This document shows positions 1 through 10,931 of a stretch of 64,000 nucleotides of DNA, in pieces. The first letter of the stretch is position 1. Each line of letters opens with the position of its first letter. The DNA comes from Basidiobolus meristosporus CBS 931.73. Lineage: Eukaryota > Fungi > Basidiobolomycota. A model generated the notes under the pieces. It saw only the letters and a list, made by a program, of their open reading frames with translations, was not told where the DNA came from and searched no databases. The position numbers and the translations under genes were made by a program. The stretch covers positions 1 to 64,000 of the forward strand of contig MCFE01000144.1 in the NCBI GenBank assembly GCA_002104905.1, read 5' to 3'.

Positions 1-263
1 AACAAGCACAGCCTCTATTTGATCTCCACAGAGCTGAATGGCGAAAGGCAGAATTGTTCCTGGATCGGTTAGAGGACCAGTTAGTAAGTGGGCCTTATGT
101 TGTGGGGGTGAAGTATACAGCTGCTGACGTCCACGTCATCCCATTACTGGTCCATCTAAAGTCAATCAAGGGCGATGTAGTGTTCTCAGGAAGACCTAAC
201 CTACAACAGTATCTAACAAGGGTATCATCAAGAGAAAGTTTCAAATTGGTGTATGATGCATAA
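1..263 (+). CDS. Glutathione S-transferase, C-terminal part (gene starts before the window)
   Basis: The frame from base 3 reads QAQPLFDLHRAEWRKAELFLDRLEDQLVSGPYVVGVKYTAADV...RPNLQQYLTRVSSRESF. This has the GST C-terminal pattern (L..LE..L...PY..G...T.AD, then P.L..Y..R...R.SF). Confidence 0.75.
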   Translation, partial: QAQPLFDLHRAEWRKAELFLDRLEDQLVSGPYVVGVKYTAADVHVIPLLVHLKSIKGDVVFSGRPNLQQYLTRVSSRESFKLVYDA

Positions 264-352
264 CAAAGCAATAAATATGCAAATGTATTTTGATTTTCAA
301 TCAAGGAAGCATCGAGGATTTATGGGCTGATTTAGCGGGAAAGGAAGTTTTT

Positions 353-459
353 GATTGAACTAGCATATATCCTTAGATTAAAAATACTCACGCTGTAACA
401 GTTCGATTGAACTAGCATATATCCTTGGATTTACAAATTACTCACGCTGTAAACAGTTC
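353..459. repeat. Tandem duplication, 2 x ~52-55 bp
   Basis: The unit gattgaactagcatatatcctt(a/g)gatt...actcacgctgtaa(a)cagttc starts at 353 and again at 405. Confidence 0.9.
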
Positions 460-1019
460 TATGTTGCAAGTGGGAACAAGAACAAGATTCTAGTGAATGG
501 TTTATCTACAGTGTTGATTGAATATACAGTAGGCGCGGCCTTTTCAAGAATAATTGTGTAGCGTCCTTTTTCTTCATGCTTCTCAACTAGTTGGTTTCCT
601 GTGGCATCGCACCATGCAGCAGCGTCACGAGCTAAACCTGCGTCAGTAGCAATGATTTCCACACGTTCACCAATAGCAATCTTATCCATCGCTTGCTTCA
701 CCTGCAAGATAGGCCCGGGGCATTGTAAAGCACAAACATTTACCTTCAAGGCAACTGAAGGAGTTTCTGTGGGAGCAGCAGCTGACTGGGAAGAAGGCAC
801 AGGGAATGGCTTGGGGACCGGAGCAATGCTGGTGGAATAAGTCTTATAACCCCCAATCAAATTACGTACATTGCGATATCCATGCCCCATTAATATGCGT
901 TGAGCCAGGTATCCGCGCAGTCCTATAATTCAGTATAGGACAACCGGCCTATTCGTCGGGATTTCGGCAAGATGTTCTCGTAAATCGTCCAAGGGAATAT
1001 TAATCGCACCTGTTAGGGT
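459..1019 (-). pseudogene. Fragment of a bacterial CoA-disulfide reductase-type multidomain gene: rhodanese domain plus TusA/SirA domain
   Basis: Reads TLTGAINIPLDDLREHLAEIPTNRPVVLY*IIGLRGYLAQRILMGHGYRNVRNLIGGYKTY (rhodanese, TGA at 930-932 in the active-site Cys position). It continues LKVNVCALQCPGPILQVKQAM...GERVEIIATDAGLARDAAAWCDATGNQL (TusA CPxP motif). No introns. Confidence 0.8.
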
Positions 1020-1141
1020 GTCCTCCAGGGTGGTCATCTCCGGATAGGCATTATATCAACAGCAGCTCCCTATTCAGGTGTCTGACCCCATTTAGGTAAG
1101 CATCCACTTTTTGTTTCTCTACGCCTTGGATTTCTGTTAGG

Positions 1142-1217
1142 TAACCAAAAATGATCTCAGTGTATTGTAAATCAATCACTAACCAAAAATGATCTCGGTG
1201 CATTGTAAATCAATCAC
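1142..1217. repeat. Tandem duplication, 2 x 38 bp
   Basis: The unit taaccaaaaatgatctc(a/g)gtg(t/c)attgtaaatcaatcac starts at 1142 and again at 1180. Confidence 0.9.
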
Positions 1218-1289
1218 CAATGATTTGGCAATAACTCATAACTTCCTTGATACTTTCCTTAATTCCCAAATACAAAAGTTAGCTTAATA

Positions 1290-1580
1290 TAGATACTACA
1301 AACTTGACCCCAAGTCTAAAAGTGACTATACCAGGTTGGTCAAGTTTGCAGTGGATTACCTCTACTCTATGGCTACAGATCTGCCTGCCTCATCATACAG
1401 ACATGCTGTCCTTGAAGCATTTGGGCTCTTACCTTATTCCATCAGAGTTCTTCACCTCAGAACAAGGCTACTCCTGACACTTCACAAATGTTGAATATTT
1501 AGCAAAACCCACTTAGAGATTGATCCTTGGTGACCCCGATGTACAAGACTTTGCCAGATTTATCAAGGAATCTAGGTAAA
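1290..1580 (+). mobile_element. Possible non-LTR retrotransposon (post-RT) remnant
   Basis: A Met-less frame YKLDPKSKSDYTRLVKFAVDYLYSMATDLPASSYRHAVLEAFGLLPYSIRVLHLRTRLL resembles LINE sequence downstream of RT. No diagnostic motif is present. Confidence 0.25.
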
Positions 1581-3476
1581 TGTATGTTTGTTCGATTGTG
1601 ATGGAGTTTGTATGGTAGGATCCATTGACATTTTGCTGCTTGTTATTGATTGGCCGACTATCTGAAGTTTTAATAGTATATCAAATCTGCGGTTGAGTTG
1701 CTGATCGTCATTTACCACGTATTCGGAGTATAAACTGGATTTTCAATCGTGTTCGCAACTTGGACAAATTGGGAAATAAACCCAAAATAGTAGATTATCC
1801 TGTGTAGCAGGCTTATTATCCTCTGCAGTATATTATCCCGTGTAACAGACATATTATCCAGTGTAGGCGTCCTGAAGTACAAACATTCCAACTGTTTCGG
1901 ATATATGGATAATTTCTCATTATACTACCTAACTGGTCGGACCGTAAAACAGATAAGCCCCTCCCCTCCAAACATAACTCGTCAAATGACTTTCCAAAGC
2001 CAAGGAATCAAGATTGCTTCGAAACCTTTATCTCCTTGAAGATACACAGCACAAAAGGCATGCTGCAGTTGTCACTGTGGTGGTGTGAAAAAGCAGACCG
2101 CTGGCCTGTACTCCTTGAAACTGAGCAAGCTTGGATATATTACCCGGACATTCGATGCTGCCTACCAAGGTGAGGATGAAGGTCTCTCCAGATATCTTGA
2201 ATATCTTAACCAGAGAGTGGAGGATTTCGAAAGTGTTGTATCTTACTTCACCACCTATTGCGGGGATCAGTTCAGTAAACGTTGGAGAATCGTGGAGAGG
2301 AGGTATGGATGTCAGTCTTTCATTTGAAGACCTGCCAAAGGGCCTTCAAGAACCAGAGAAGCCAAGGGTAAAGAGCCATACTTAGCCAACTGGGTCCCAA
2401 AGACCGCTTCATCAGTTACCTGATATGCTTGGCTTGGGTGTCATCTGCTTGCAATACCCGAGCTATTGACCAACAGGAGCGACAGGAAATTTTTGCTCAA
2501 GAACTCCTTGGCAGCCTTCTTGGCCTTGTTCATGTTGTTCAGGTCCAGTCCCAAGAAATCAAGTTTTGGCTCCGGTGCTTTAGAGTACTGCCCCTGATCT
2601 CTTTCTTTGCTTGTTCGTGCTACAGTAGGTCAAGAAGATGGGAGCCCCTTGGCTCTCTGGTCAGGGATACGGTCATAGCAGTAGCAACTTGGAGTGACAA
2701 ATGCCTTTCGACATGTGCCTTGTCTCATGGACGGCCGTATTAATGTCGATAATAAGTTTTTGGGTGCTGCGTAAGGGTAAGCGTCATTTATAGGAAACGC
2801 AATCCATATCCACAGCTTCCGGAGTTCCAGGATAGCATCGATCTCTCCTTGCCCTTTTCTGATGATTATGGAAACTGAAGCTACCACACGCCACTTTGGT
2901 GAAGAAGGAATTAAGCTTGCCAAAGAGCATAAGGAGTTGGATCTTATGGAAGGAGAAGTTTATATATCCCCTCATGACCATGTTACGGAGTTGATCCCCG
3001 AGTTGGTGAACTTCATATAAGTCAGTAACAAGATGATACTTTTGATGTAACTTTCAACCTTGATGCTATTTGTTTCAAGACTAACGTAGTTAATCATGTC
3101 AAATAATTGCATATCATAGTTGAATACCCAGACTACAGGTGACGTACATGTAAGCTAAATGCTCACTAATCTGACAGTAAAAGAAGCACGCCTATTGACT
3201 CTCCAAAACCACGGAAGCAAGGTAATCTGAAACCTTCATCTACCCGAAAATACTCAACCCAAAGCATAGGCGGTTATGTCTATCCCGCTGCTTGATGTAT
3301 ATTACATAATACACCATGAAAGCCATCGTAGTTCTAACCAAAAATGGTTGGTATCTCATCATCAAAAAAAATATGATCATTTGCCAGAAATTTCGATCAA
3401 TTTGTCATCCAGTTACACGAGCCCATTATATAACGTGACTCGATGAACCTGGTTTGGTATTCAGAACTAAATTACA

Positions 3477-4242
3477 ATGCCAGCCAATCTTCCACGCAGA
3501 GCACTACTTGCCATCACCAGCTATAACGAGCCATTTTACGCTAACGGCAGTAAAACTGGACTGTTTTACGACATTGCATCCTTACGAAGCGCTTGTTGAG
3601 GCCGGGTTTGAGGTCGATTTTGCCACCGAGACTGGTACCTACGGGATGGATGAGCACTCCCTGTCCAAGGATTTCCTCTCCGAAGATGATCAAAAGGTGC
3701 TGGCCGACCCTTCACACCCTTTCAATGTCAAGCTGAACTCGCAGCTTTACAAGGCAGAAGATCTCAACCCTGCTGACTATGGACTGTTCTTTGCCTCTGC
3801 TGGCCACGCAACCCTTTGGGATTATCCTACAGCTCGTCACCTGCAGCATATTGCTGAAGACATTTATAAGCGCGGGGGTGTGGTTTCGGCTGTATGTCAT
3901 GGGCCCGCCATTCTCCCCGGAATCATGGACAGCACCACTGGTAAATCCATTATTACTGGCAAAAAGGTTACTGGGTTCACCACCGAGGGTGAGGAAATGC
4001 TAAATCTGCTTGAGCTGATTAAATCGGCCAATGTGGCTACAATCGAGGAAGGAGCAGCGGCGGTCGGAGCAGAGTATGTGGCACCCCCTACTCCATTTGC
4101 CGACTTTACTCATACAGATGGCAGGGTGGTCACTGGAGCTAACCCTGCAAGTGCTAAATCTACTGCCATAAATGCTATCAAAGTGTTCTTGGTCTTTAAG
4201 AGGCTATCCATGTGTATAATATGTAATCCATGTTCATTGTAA
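3477..4242 (+). pseudogene. Hsp31-type DJ-1/PfpI glyoxalase III, frameshifted near base 3570
   Basis: ATG at 3477 gives MPANLPRRALLAITSYNEPFYANGSKTGLFY. The sequence then shifts frame to TLHPYEALVEAGFEVDF...FFASAGHATLWDY...VSAVCHGPA...VTGFTTEGEE...DGRVVTGANPASA, which carries the Hsp31 motifs including catalytic Cys-His. Confidence 0.85.
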
Positions 4243-4487
4243 AGAGAATAACAACCTTCTATGCGAATAAAATACGCAAATACAGCCTATATAGTCATTG
4301 TATTGGTAGGTAAATTTGCGTGTATAGATAATAACTTATAGTACTACCGTTGGCGGCTTAGCTTTGTTTACTCTAATCATGAAAACTCCACAGATTCTTA
4401 CTCCTGTTTTACTAACAATTTCACCGTTGAATAATTAGATAGATATATCTAACAGACCTAGTTATCTACATATCTGTGCCTCATTTC

Positions 4488-4836
4488 TGCTGTAAGAGTC
4501 TTGGAGATATTGGAAGCGATTGGGAGAACAAGTAGATTATTTGGTTCTCACTTAATGATTTATTGAATGTAAAAGTAGTACTAATACTTTTACATGGTCT
4601 TGGCATTACAAACATGTAGAATAGGTCAAGAAAGGTCCCAAGAACATGTGTGCAAAGCTTGGGGCTGTTTGGCCAACATTGAGAATTTTCATGTTCTAGG
4701 TACCTGGTATTTTGGTGCAAATATTCCAAGTAAATCCTGACAAAGAATTTGGTCAGTATTCTCTAGGATTTGAAGGTAATGATCTAAGTGACTAAGTTGA
4801 GTGAATACTTAGGTGGAATTCCGAATTTTTACAACA
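4488..4836 (-). repeat. Copia LTR (349 bp)
   Basis: Termini TGCTGTAAG...TTTTACAACA; flanks ATTTC/ATTTG; homologous to the LTRs at 6523 and 7537. Confidence 0.9.
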
Positions 4837-6522
4837 ATTTGGGCTATTTCTTGTCCCATTGGATCTCTGGGCATTTGATACAGGAATGATTACTTCTGGG
4901 ATACTCCTGGGCACTGCTTCAGGCTGAACCATGGTTGTAGAGTCCTCTGGAGTGAAGAAATTGCATTGTTTTGCTCTGATTCAATCCTGACAATTGGTGG
5001 ACTTGAGATCAGATTTTTGTCATCACCTGCTGTTGTTTTTTGTGGAAATCTTGAATTTTCATTGAACAAAACATCCCTGGACTTGATCAGCTTCATTGCT
5101 TTGGTATTGTAGAGTCTGTATGCTTTACTCTTGTTGCAGTAACCCAAAAATATGCATTTTACACTTTTTGGCTCAAATTTTGACTGATTTCTGGGCAGTT
5201 TCTTGGCATATGCTGTACACCCAAATATTCTTAGATGTTCTGCACTTGGTCTGTAGCCATACCATGCTTCAAATGGAGTAGAATCACAAAGTATTCTACT
5301 ATAACTCTTATTTCTAAGATATACAGCAGTGGCAACTCATTCTGCCCAAAAATCATAGGATAATTTTTGATCATGGATCATAGATCTTGCCATATCAATT
5401 ATTGATCTGTTAGGACATTCTGCTACCTCATTTTGCTGTGGGGAGTATGGTACAGTAGTCTCTTGCATTATCCCATGAATTTTGCAGAAGCGATAGAAGA
5501 GTTTTGCAGTATAACTCCACCAATGTCAGAGCATATTTTCTTGATTTTTTCACCAGTTTCTCTCTCCACCATGGCTTTGAACTCCCTGAGCTTAGACAGA
5601 GCTTCTTCCTTTCTCTCCATGAAGTAAACCCACATGTATCTTGTATAATCATCAATAAAAGTGATTAAATACTTCATTCCACCTAAGGATAAATTTTGCA
5701 TAGGTCCACACAGATCTGAGTGAATTAGATCTTATTTTTTCTTAGTTTTGATCAACCCAGAGCTCCTGAACAATTGTCTGACTTGTTTCCCATATATGCA
5801 GGCTTTACAGTGCTCCAAGTCAGCTGGAGAAGCAATTTCTACTCCAGAAATTAGCTGATCTTGATCATTTTGTGCAAATAATCAAAATTGATGTGCCCAA
5901 ATCTCCTGTGCCAAAGCATTGGTGTTTCTTCATTTAAGTTGCTAATATTGGCTTCCAAACATGATGGAATACAAGTCAACTTGTATTGATTCTGATCTCT
6001 GATACCCAAAGCAATATGGGCACCATTTTGATCAGTGATCTTGCAACCAGAATTGTCAAAGTTGAAACTGAGTCCTTCTGCAGTGGCCTTGTGTACAGAT
6101 AGTAGGTTCTTGGCTATTTCTGGTACATAGAGTACTTCTTTAAAGGTCAGTGTATGGCCTCCGTCACTGCTTCTCAGGCTTACTTGGATAGTTCCTTCTC
6201 CCACTGCATCAAGTGTTCTATTGTCACCCATGAAAACCTTCTTAATTGGAATTTCTTGATATTAGGTAAAAAGTTCTTTTTGGTGTGTAAAGTGTTGAGA
6301 TAATCCAGAGTCAATGTACCACGTCTGAGAATCCTTGTTTGTGGTCATATTTAGTGCAGATATGAATAATCTATATTCAGCTGTTGCAGCATTTCCATAT
6401 TCAGGCTTTGTTTGCTGACTATCTCTCCTTTTGAAGCACTGGTATGATGTGTGTCCTCTCCTTTTGCAGTAGTTACAAAACAGGCTGCTGTTGTCTTTGT
6501 AGGGTCTTGGCTACCTCCTTTG

Positions 6523-10442: not shown

Positions 10443-10931
10443 ATGCCATACGCACCTTTTGACTACAGCCTTCCCTACGCCTCCCTTAACTTACGCGAGC
10501 AACCTCACTTGTATCGAGTTGGTAAAGGGGAGCAAGGGGTTCTATTAGTTGAACCATACAAGTCGGAACTACTGCCTCTTTGGCGCTTCCGTACCCCGGA
10601 GATTGCCAGCGAATCCTCTGCGAAGCTACTAGAAAAGTTCGAAGAGTATAGGGAAACGGGGGATTTCGTCGGGATGGATATGGCACGGAAGTTTATACAA
10701 ATGGGAGTCACAAGAGCCCGACGTTATGCGAACCATAAAGGGGGAAGGAAATACCTCAAAACTAAGGTGGGAGGGAAGAAAATAGAGCTACCTAGAGATA
10801 AGGAGGACCCGGTTAAAGCAGAGTCGGCCAGGATCTTTGGGAAAGTTTTAAAACACGTGAAAGAAGACGAAAAGTATCAGAAACTGCTTCATGAACATCA
10901 ACAGAAATACACGTCGCAGGAAAAGAAATGA
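10443..10931 (+). CDS. DUF4385 family protein, intronless
   Basis: Motifs YRVGKGEQGVLLVEPYKSE, WRF.TPEIA and DFVGMDMARKFIQMG.TRARRYANHKGGRKY. Confidence 0.85.
   Translation: MPYAPFDYSLPYASLNLREQPHLYRVGKGEQGVLLVEPYKSELLPLWRFRTPEIASESSAKLLEKFEEYRETGDFVGMDMARKFIQMGVTRARRYANHKGGRKYLKTKVGGKKIELPRDKEDPVKAESARIFGKVLKHVKEDEKYQKLLHEHQQKYTSQEKK

Follow-up and report, generated by a model that had tools for sequence, protein, structure and literature searches.

A minus-strand reading frame in which a rhodanese domain is followed by a TusA/SirA domain lies near the start of a contig of the fungus Basidiobolus meristosporus CBS 931.73, and the question it raises is whether it marks a fresh arrival of bacterial DNA or the remnant of a gene that the fungus already possessed. 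The window analyzed here covers the initial 64 kb of contig MCFE01000144.1 (155,026 nt; assembly GCA_002104905.1). Window position 1 is contig position 1, which places the frame less than 1 kb from the contig end. The strain was isolated from gecko dung and sequenced with PacBio technology, and gene transfer from gut bacteria to Basidiobolus has already been published (PMC7466969). An earlier note on this DNA had guessed at a gut-associated fungus, which the isolation source bears out, and had read the frame as a fairly recent bacterium-to-fungus transfer that is now pseudogenising. The evidence points instead to a fragment that is probably a 5'-truncated, dead-end duplicate of a resident and maintained Basidiobolus gene family, itself horizontally acquired.

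A profile built from 60 full-length homologues and run against the six frames of the 64-kb window gave one match, 1019..474, which covers profile positions 489-674 with an E value of 4e-73. Together with the Pfam match to TusA (E 2.4e-18), this confirms the rhodanese-TusA frame. The fragment proper occupies 531-1012 on the minus strand and contains the C-terminal ~60% of the rhodanese domain, a linker, and the complete TusA domain. The locus is laid out as follows.

3..263, plus strand: 3' end of a glutathione S-transferase (GST) gene, cut by the contig start (Pfam GST_C, E 1.7e-9).
333..458, minus strand: 3' flank that the reads show to be common to other gene copies, with a 52-nt tandem duplication at 350-455 (raised depth; unitigs diverge left of 333).
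459..890, minus strand: annotated 143-aa ORF (P0001; NCBI, UniRef, EukProt), the last ~20 residues of which are unreliable.
531..1012, minus strand: CoADR-rhodanese-TusA gene remnant, equivalent to residues ~485-638 of the 643-aa fungal protein, or about 24% of the gene.
540..746, minus strand: complete TusA/SirA domain with the CPGP Cys motif and CALQCP (Pfam PF01206, residues 62-130 of the 156-aa piece).
831..929, minus strand: remainder of the rhodanese domain (IIGLRGYLAQRILMGHGYRNVRNLIGGYKTY), including the conserved Met at 888-890; matches the C-termini of the Npsr and CoADR-RHD structures.
930..932, minus strand: TGA stop at the rhodanese catalytic Cys position (placed by the Cys column, the 3NTA offset, and exact unitigs).
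933..1010, minus strand: rhodanese part ahead of the active site (GAINIPLDDLREHLAEIPTNRPVVLY), with 77% identity to bacterial homologues over 26 aa.
1013..1904, no strand assigned: multi-copy repeat at the 5' break (from unitig depth), with a 38-nt tandem duplication at 1142-1217 and no homology to the gene.
About 4486-6300, minus strand: degenerate Ty1/copia retroelement with integrase motifs, in ORF pieces such as FIDDYTRYMWVYF and WHRRFGHINFDYLHKM.

The GST gene and the transposable element remnants that the earlier note had named as neighbors are therefore both present, the latter as the degenerate copia-like element. Read on the minus strand, the frame runs from YPEMTTLEDTLT across the break into GAINIPLDDLREHLAEIPTNRPVVLY, the stop, IIGLRGYLAQRILMGHGYRNVRNLIGGYKTYSTS, a linker, and LKVNVCALQCPGPILQ, and then through RYTIILEK to the ORF end at 459. 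In short form it reads ...TLT, the break, GAINIPLDDLREHLAEIPTNRPVVLY, the stop, IIGLRGYLAQRILMGHGYRNVRNLIGGYKTY, the linker, LKVNVCALQCPGPILQ, and ...EK.... Searches of the remnant with P0438, P0480, and P0482 by tblastn returned 67-70% identity (E 1e-68 to 7e-73). The PF01206 match spans profile positions 2-70 of 70 and scores 66.2 bits against a Pfam gathering cut-off of 28.6, and the TusA structures matched in the PDB were 1PAV, 1DCJ, and 3LVJ. The Cys-Pro-x-Pro sulfur-carrying motif is kept (LQCPGP), and its Cys is invariant in the alignment. On the other side of the linker, the rhodanese domain begins at GAINIP with its first strand and helix missing, and the 40 residues preceding the stop give a weak Pfam rhodanese signal (E 0.28). 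No other piece of the gene was found in the 64 kb with the 60-homologue profile and tblastn. By the same profile, the flavoprotein reductase (the N-terminal FAD/NAD(P) pyridine nucleotide-disulfide oxidoreductase and dimerisation domains) is absent from the window. Two candidate remnants were rejected. A stretch at 2755-2850 resembled an upstream part of the gene by tblastn (E 0.4-1) but had a profile iE of 200. In the ORF tail, MAFFT and BLAST alignments had extended against the start of DsrE (TRILFLF... against GKTLILFSDD); this resemblance scored 19, compared with 19.9 +/- 3.2 for shuffled DNA, and extra A's end the ORF earlier.

The extent of the piece was examined in sequencing reads, of which X1 and X2 are two runs of one sample, X3 is a second organism from the same study, and X4-X6 come from another study under the same species label. 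Homology had been thought to reach 1019, and the unitigs set its 5' end at 1012/1013 instead. Upstream of GAINIP they continue as ...VEEYSFSSIP, which is the rhodanese domain start that the window fragment lacks. This longer form was also found in X3, which shows only the longer copy. In X1 and X2, the piece identical to the window is accompanied by a second variant that differs at 13-15 positions (93% identity) and is similarly deep. The depth of either is ~2.2 times that measured over the unique stretch 2156-2761, where unitigs and assembly are identical. Read unitigs thus place a closer and longer copy, 93-99% identical, in the same strain, and a search of annotated proteins of 223-709 aa found none nearer to the fragment than the intact fungal P0438. 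Because this closer copy is seen only as short unitigs, we infer the identity of the parent copy and the age of the break. Some unitigs match rightward from 1011 and differ to the left, with loose ends at 1011/1012 and 1904. Moreover, the summed unitig depth over 1013-1904 is about 4-16 times that of 2156-2761; therefore the sequence adjoining the break is a repeat. Copy-to-copy homology also stops near 333. No piece of 1-3500 recurs elsewhere in the window. The tandem duplications of 52 nt (two units, 350-455) and 38 nt (two units, 1142-1217) flank the fragment, and at the former the unitigs suggest copy-number variation. X4-X6 contained next to none of the fragment's words and no piece with at least 85% identity over 459-1012; the fragment's lineage may be absent from that strain or more diverged in it.

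A fragment that lies 459-1012 nt from the start of a contig in a PacBio assembly (PMC7466969) could also be a product of that assembly, in which case 1012/1013 would be a chimera joining reads from a full-length copy to reads from the repeat. Of the words sampled from 300-1300, the strain's own runs contain only 58-63%. The sequences on either side of the junction are also seen in other contexts, several bases and two indels are unsupported by unitigs, and among the short unitigs of the runs no unitig or read was seen to span the junction. Nevertheless, this explanation is quite unlikely: the TGA variant is real DNA, represented by unitigs identical over 786-993 beside the distinct 93% variant at similar depth, and the chimera would have to have formed inside single reads because PacBio reads are much longer than the 680-bp piece. 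Across window positions 1-2100, the strain's short-read unitigs and the PacBio assembly differ at ~30 bases, mostly transitions, and by several single-base indels, which reflects either collapsed near-identical paralogues or a poorly polished contig end. Relative to the window, every unitig of X1, X2, and X3 carries two additional A's, one following 516 and one following 525. With these bases the ORF would end in ...AAPTVIFNSTL and a stop, near the end of the B. ranarum protein. The tail of the annotated 143-aa protein is doubtful, since the unitigs contradict two bases there.

The stop codon itself was found to be well placed and real. The column of the TGA is occupied by Cys in 60 of 60 homologues. 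Residues 2-33 past the stop align with residues 533-563 of Shewanella Npsr (3NTA), and B. anthracis CoADR-RHD aligns as well. The stop was therefore placed at 3NTA residue 531, which we take to be the rhodanese catalytic Cys of Npsr. The stop is also supported by the reads, since unitigs of X1 and X2 match the window exactly over 786-979 and 786-993. An in-frame TGA at exactly this position raises the idea that it encodes selenocysteine. The N-terminal part of the rhodanese is missing, however, and no SECIS element or other Rfam match was found in 1-3000 at E values up to 1, which leaves this idea extremely improbable; Basidiobolus is mentioned nowhere in the text of a survey of Sec-using fungi (10.1101/314781). 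The sequence NVCALQCP had also been singled out as unusual. This is correct for its A, which is private to this copy in place of a Gly (the Gly of CGLQCP, two residues before the Cys) found in 60 of 60 homologues, whereas its V is common to all fungal copies. As the flavoprotein domain is lacking, the rhodanese start is missing, and the catalytic Cys codon is a stop, the fragment would be unable to act as a reductase or sulfurtransferase and, judged by its sequence, is presumably dead in both roles.

Intact relatives of the fragment are found within the genus. In B. meristosporus these are ORY02540.1, ORX88953.1, and ORX75525.1 (643 aa), together with ORX64446.1 (537 aa), and in B. ranarum KAK9700965.1 (667 aa). 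DsrE is absent from all fungal copies, and the full-length fungal genes all end shortly past TusA. The earlier view that the frame is cut at both ends is therefore right for the 5' end and wrong for the 3' end. The 643-aa copies on L002, L004, and L005 (contigs MCFE01000056, 01001009, and 01001205) share the same small called genes upstream (123/126/155/128 aa). Copies of this gene differ by ~1% (L002 against L003, 150 shared codons), and they are either segmental duplicates or uncollapsed haplotypes. The fragment is 70% identical to the intact fungal genes in amino acids and 71-74% in bases (a base divergence of about 28%), which leaves it no closer to them than to the nearest bacteria: 69.9% amino-acid identity to the intact fungal P0438, 69.6% to the bacterial P0390, and 70% to Bacteroidaceae MAG N1166.5. 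With identities this low to the intact fungal genes, the fragment was assigned to a third lineage of the family.

The bacterial relatives were collected in a scan of one genome per species, which yielded 593 loci. The best 80 of these all belong to Bacteroidales, led by Bacteroidaceae MAG N1166.5 (70%), Bacteroides sp. GD17 (67%), and uncultured Bacteroides UMGS1845 (66%). The bacterial proteins have ~815-830 aa and the order reductase, rhodanese, TusA, DsrE, as the earlier note had stated for this domain combination. Its attribution of the frame to Bacteroidetes is likewise supported, both by these loci and by the position of the fungal clade described below. A peptide search found no exact fragment peptides in bacterial genomes, and a scan of JGI metagenomes gave only a 36% identical TusA.

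A maximum-likelihood tree was built from 61 rows over the 193 columns covered by the fragment. The fragment falls inside a Basidiobolus clade (UFBoot 99 / SH-aLRT 91), fungal monophyly is seen in 98% of bootstrap trees, and within the clade the fragment lies beside the B. ranarum gene (98/68). This clade is nested among Bacteroides sequences. A phylogeny of the homologues had been proposed as a check on the transfer, and it groups the fragment with the intact Basidiobolus genes, not as a separate bacterial lineage. Moreover, all five fungal sequences have two fungus-only residues, a Val where 56 of 56 bacteria have Ala and a Leu or Ile where 56 of 56 have Phe, and the fragment is similar to B. 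ranarum in its variable linker as well. Taken together, this makes it very probable that the fungal sequences go back to one origin.

These results bear on whether a piece of a Bacteroides gene could have entered the fungus separately and fairly recently, and be decaying independently of the intact fungal genes. Such an origin would fit the equal amino-acid identities to P0390 and P0438 and the 3' flank of the fragment, which has no homology above shuffles to the 3' flanks of the retrieved fungal copies. In addition, placing the fragment beside its closest bacterial protein, P0482, costs 11.7 log-likelihood units and is not rejected by the AU test (p 0.104). It is opposed by the fungal monophyly, by the two residues seen in none of the 56 bacteria, by the linker, and by a base identity of only about 70% to any sampled bacterium, and we consider it very unlikely. 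In fact, synonymous sites are saturated against every sampled bacterium, and for this reason the transfer is not recent. The clade shared with intact genes, the fungus-only residues, the ~28% divergence with dS above 1 among fungal copies, and the ~70% identity to bacteria together argue for an old transfer and a maintained family. What stands of the earlier reading is that this copy is broken; what does not stand is that its transfer was recent or separate. The sequences indicate that only this duplicate is decaying, while the acquired family appears to be old and under selection.

Substitution rates were compared by the Nei-Gojobori method over 150 shared codons. The fragment has a dN/dS of 0.11 (dS 1.6) against the 643-aa type and of 0.15 (dS 1.13) when compared with the B. 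ranarum gene; dS to the intact fungal genes ranges over 1.1-1.7. Between the two intact fungal types, dN/dS is 0.175 at a dS of 0.9. From these low ratios it follows that purifying selection acted on the fragment's lineage during almost the whole of its divergence. As they are no higher than the ratio between intact genes, the truncation and the stop arose late compared with the paralogue split.

Low pairwise dN/dS could also reflect a product that is still in use. The ORF at 459-890 has an ATG, is annotated as a protein, and contains the whole TusA domain, Cys motif included, and in the reads the exact sequence has about twice the single-copy depth. The stop and the conserved Met might have released this ORF as an expressed stand-alone TusA-like sulfur carrier, perhaps one that works with the intact paralogues. 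If true, a gene would have been born in a fungus by domain fission of a horizontally acquired fusion enzyme. Such a fission is unlikely: the low dN/dS is accounted for by the history prior to the break, the invariant Gly near the active Cys has been replaced, assembly and reads disagree on the C-terminal tail, and the second organism (X3) shows only the longer copy. The TusA-only product that had been suggested from the ATG at 890 does correspond to an existing, annotated ORF, but this ATG is the conserved internal Met of RILMG and not a new start, and no RNA run was found that contains the stretch. Because the RILMG Met is conserved in every family member, the ORF follows automatically from the stop.

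The truncated duplicate of a resident family thus remains the preferred explanation, and its history may be outlined as follows. An ancestor of Basidiobolus would have acquired, from Bacteroides, the gene for a sulfur enzyme with four domains (CoA-disulfide/persulfide reductase, rhodanese, TusA, DsrE); this ancestry is visible in the tree, and from it we infer the order of events. The fungal descendants have no DsrE, and they persist as intact genes of ~643-667 aa in several copies in at least two species. Of one lineage of the family, the locus retains the final ~160 codons with ~125 bp of 3' flank, which together form the 680-bp piece 333-1012, and this piece lies between the GST gene and the 0.9-kb repeat. 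In DNA this rich in repeats, ectopic recombination or partial duplication most likely caused the break. The open TusA frame, which starts at a Met found in every family member, is most probably a by-product of the stop and not a new gene.

Relatives of the degenerate Ty1/copia element were observed at L002 7579-10330 and L006 287-1641, with 72-85% identity and a few kb from intact genes in B. meristosporus and B. ranarum; such nearby copies may help the CoADR-rhodanese-TusA family to duplicate. Elsewhere in the window, an uninterrupted 162-aa ORF on the plus strand at 10443-10931 encodes a full-length DUF4385 domain (Pfam E 1.5e-66) and could be another bacterial-type gene.

The fragment itself adds little, as it would be an ordinary leftover of a known acquired family. 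Its interest lies in the picture of such a family being duplicated and eroded in repeat-rich DNA, with at least three diverged lineages in the genus Basidiobolus. The 143-aa protein in GenBank is probably the product of a pseudogene. For transfer screens a caution follows, namely that bacterial best hits of a fragment need not mean a separate or recent transfer.

Compared with known systems, the product of the ORF at 459-890 would have a TusA fold about as large as that of the stand-alone TusA proteins of E. coli (1DCJ/3LVJ) and Thermoplasma (Ta1170, 1PAV), with the same Cys-Pro-x-Pro motif. Unlike these, it has a 60-residue N-terminal leftover of rhodanese and linker, would originate from the truncation of a fusion, and has Ala at the conserved Gly. 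The C-terminus of the rhodanese in Npsr (3NTA, Shewanella loihica) and CoADR-RHD (3ICS, Bacillus anthracis) aligns with the fragment; these are two-domain proteins without TusA, whereas the fragment is without the reductase domain and the catalytic Cys. The nearest non-fungal relatives are the four-domain proteins of Bacteroides and Bacteroidaceae, which have the domains of the retained part in the same order and are 66-70% identical to it. Unlike the fragment, they have the N-terminal reductase and the C-terminal DsrE, and they have Ala and Phe in place of the fungal Val and Leu/Ile. The intact genes of B. meristosporus and B. ranarum differ from the fragment in that they are full length and possess both the flavoprotein domain and the catalytic Cys. 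With them it shares the rhodanese-linker-TusA order without DsrE, the intronless frame, the fungus-only residues, and membership of the same clade.
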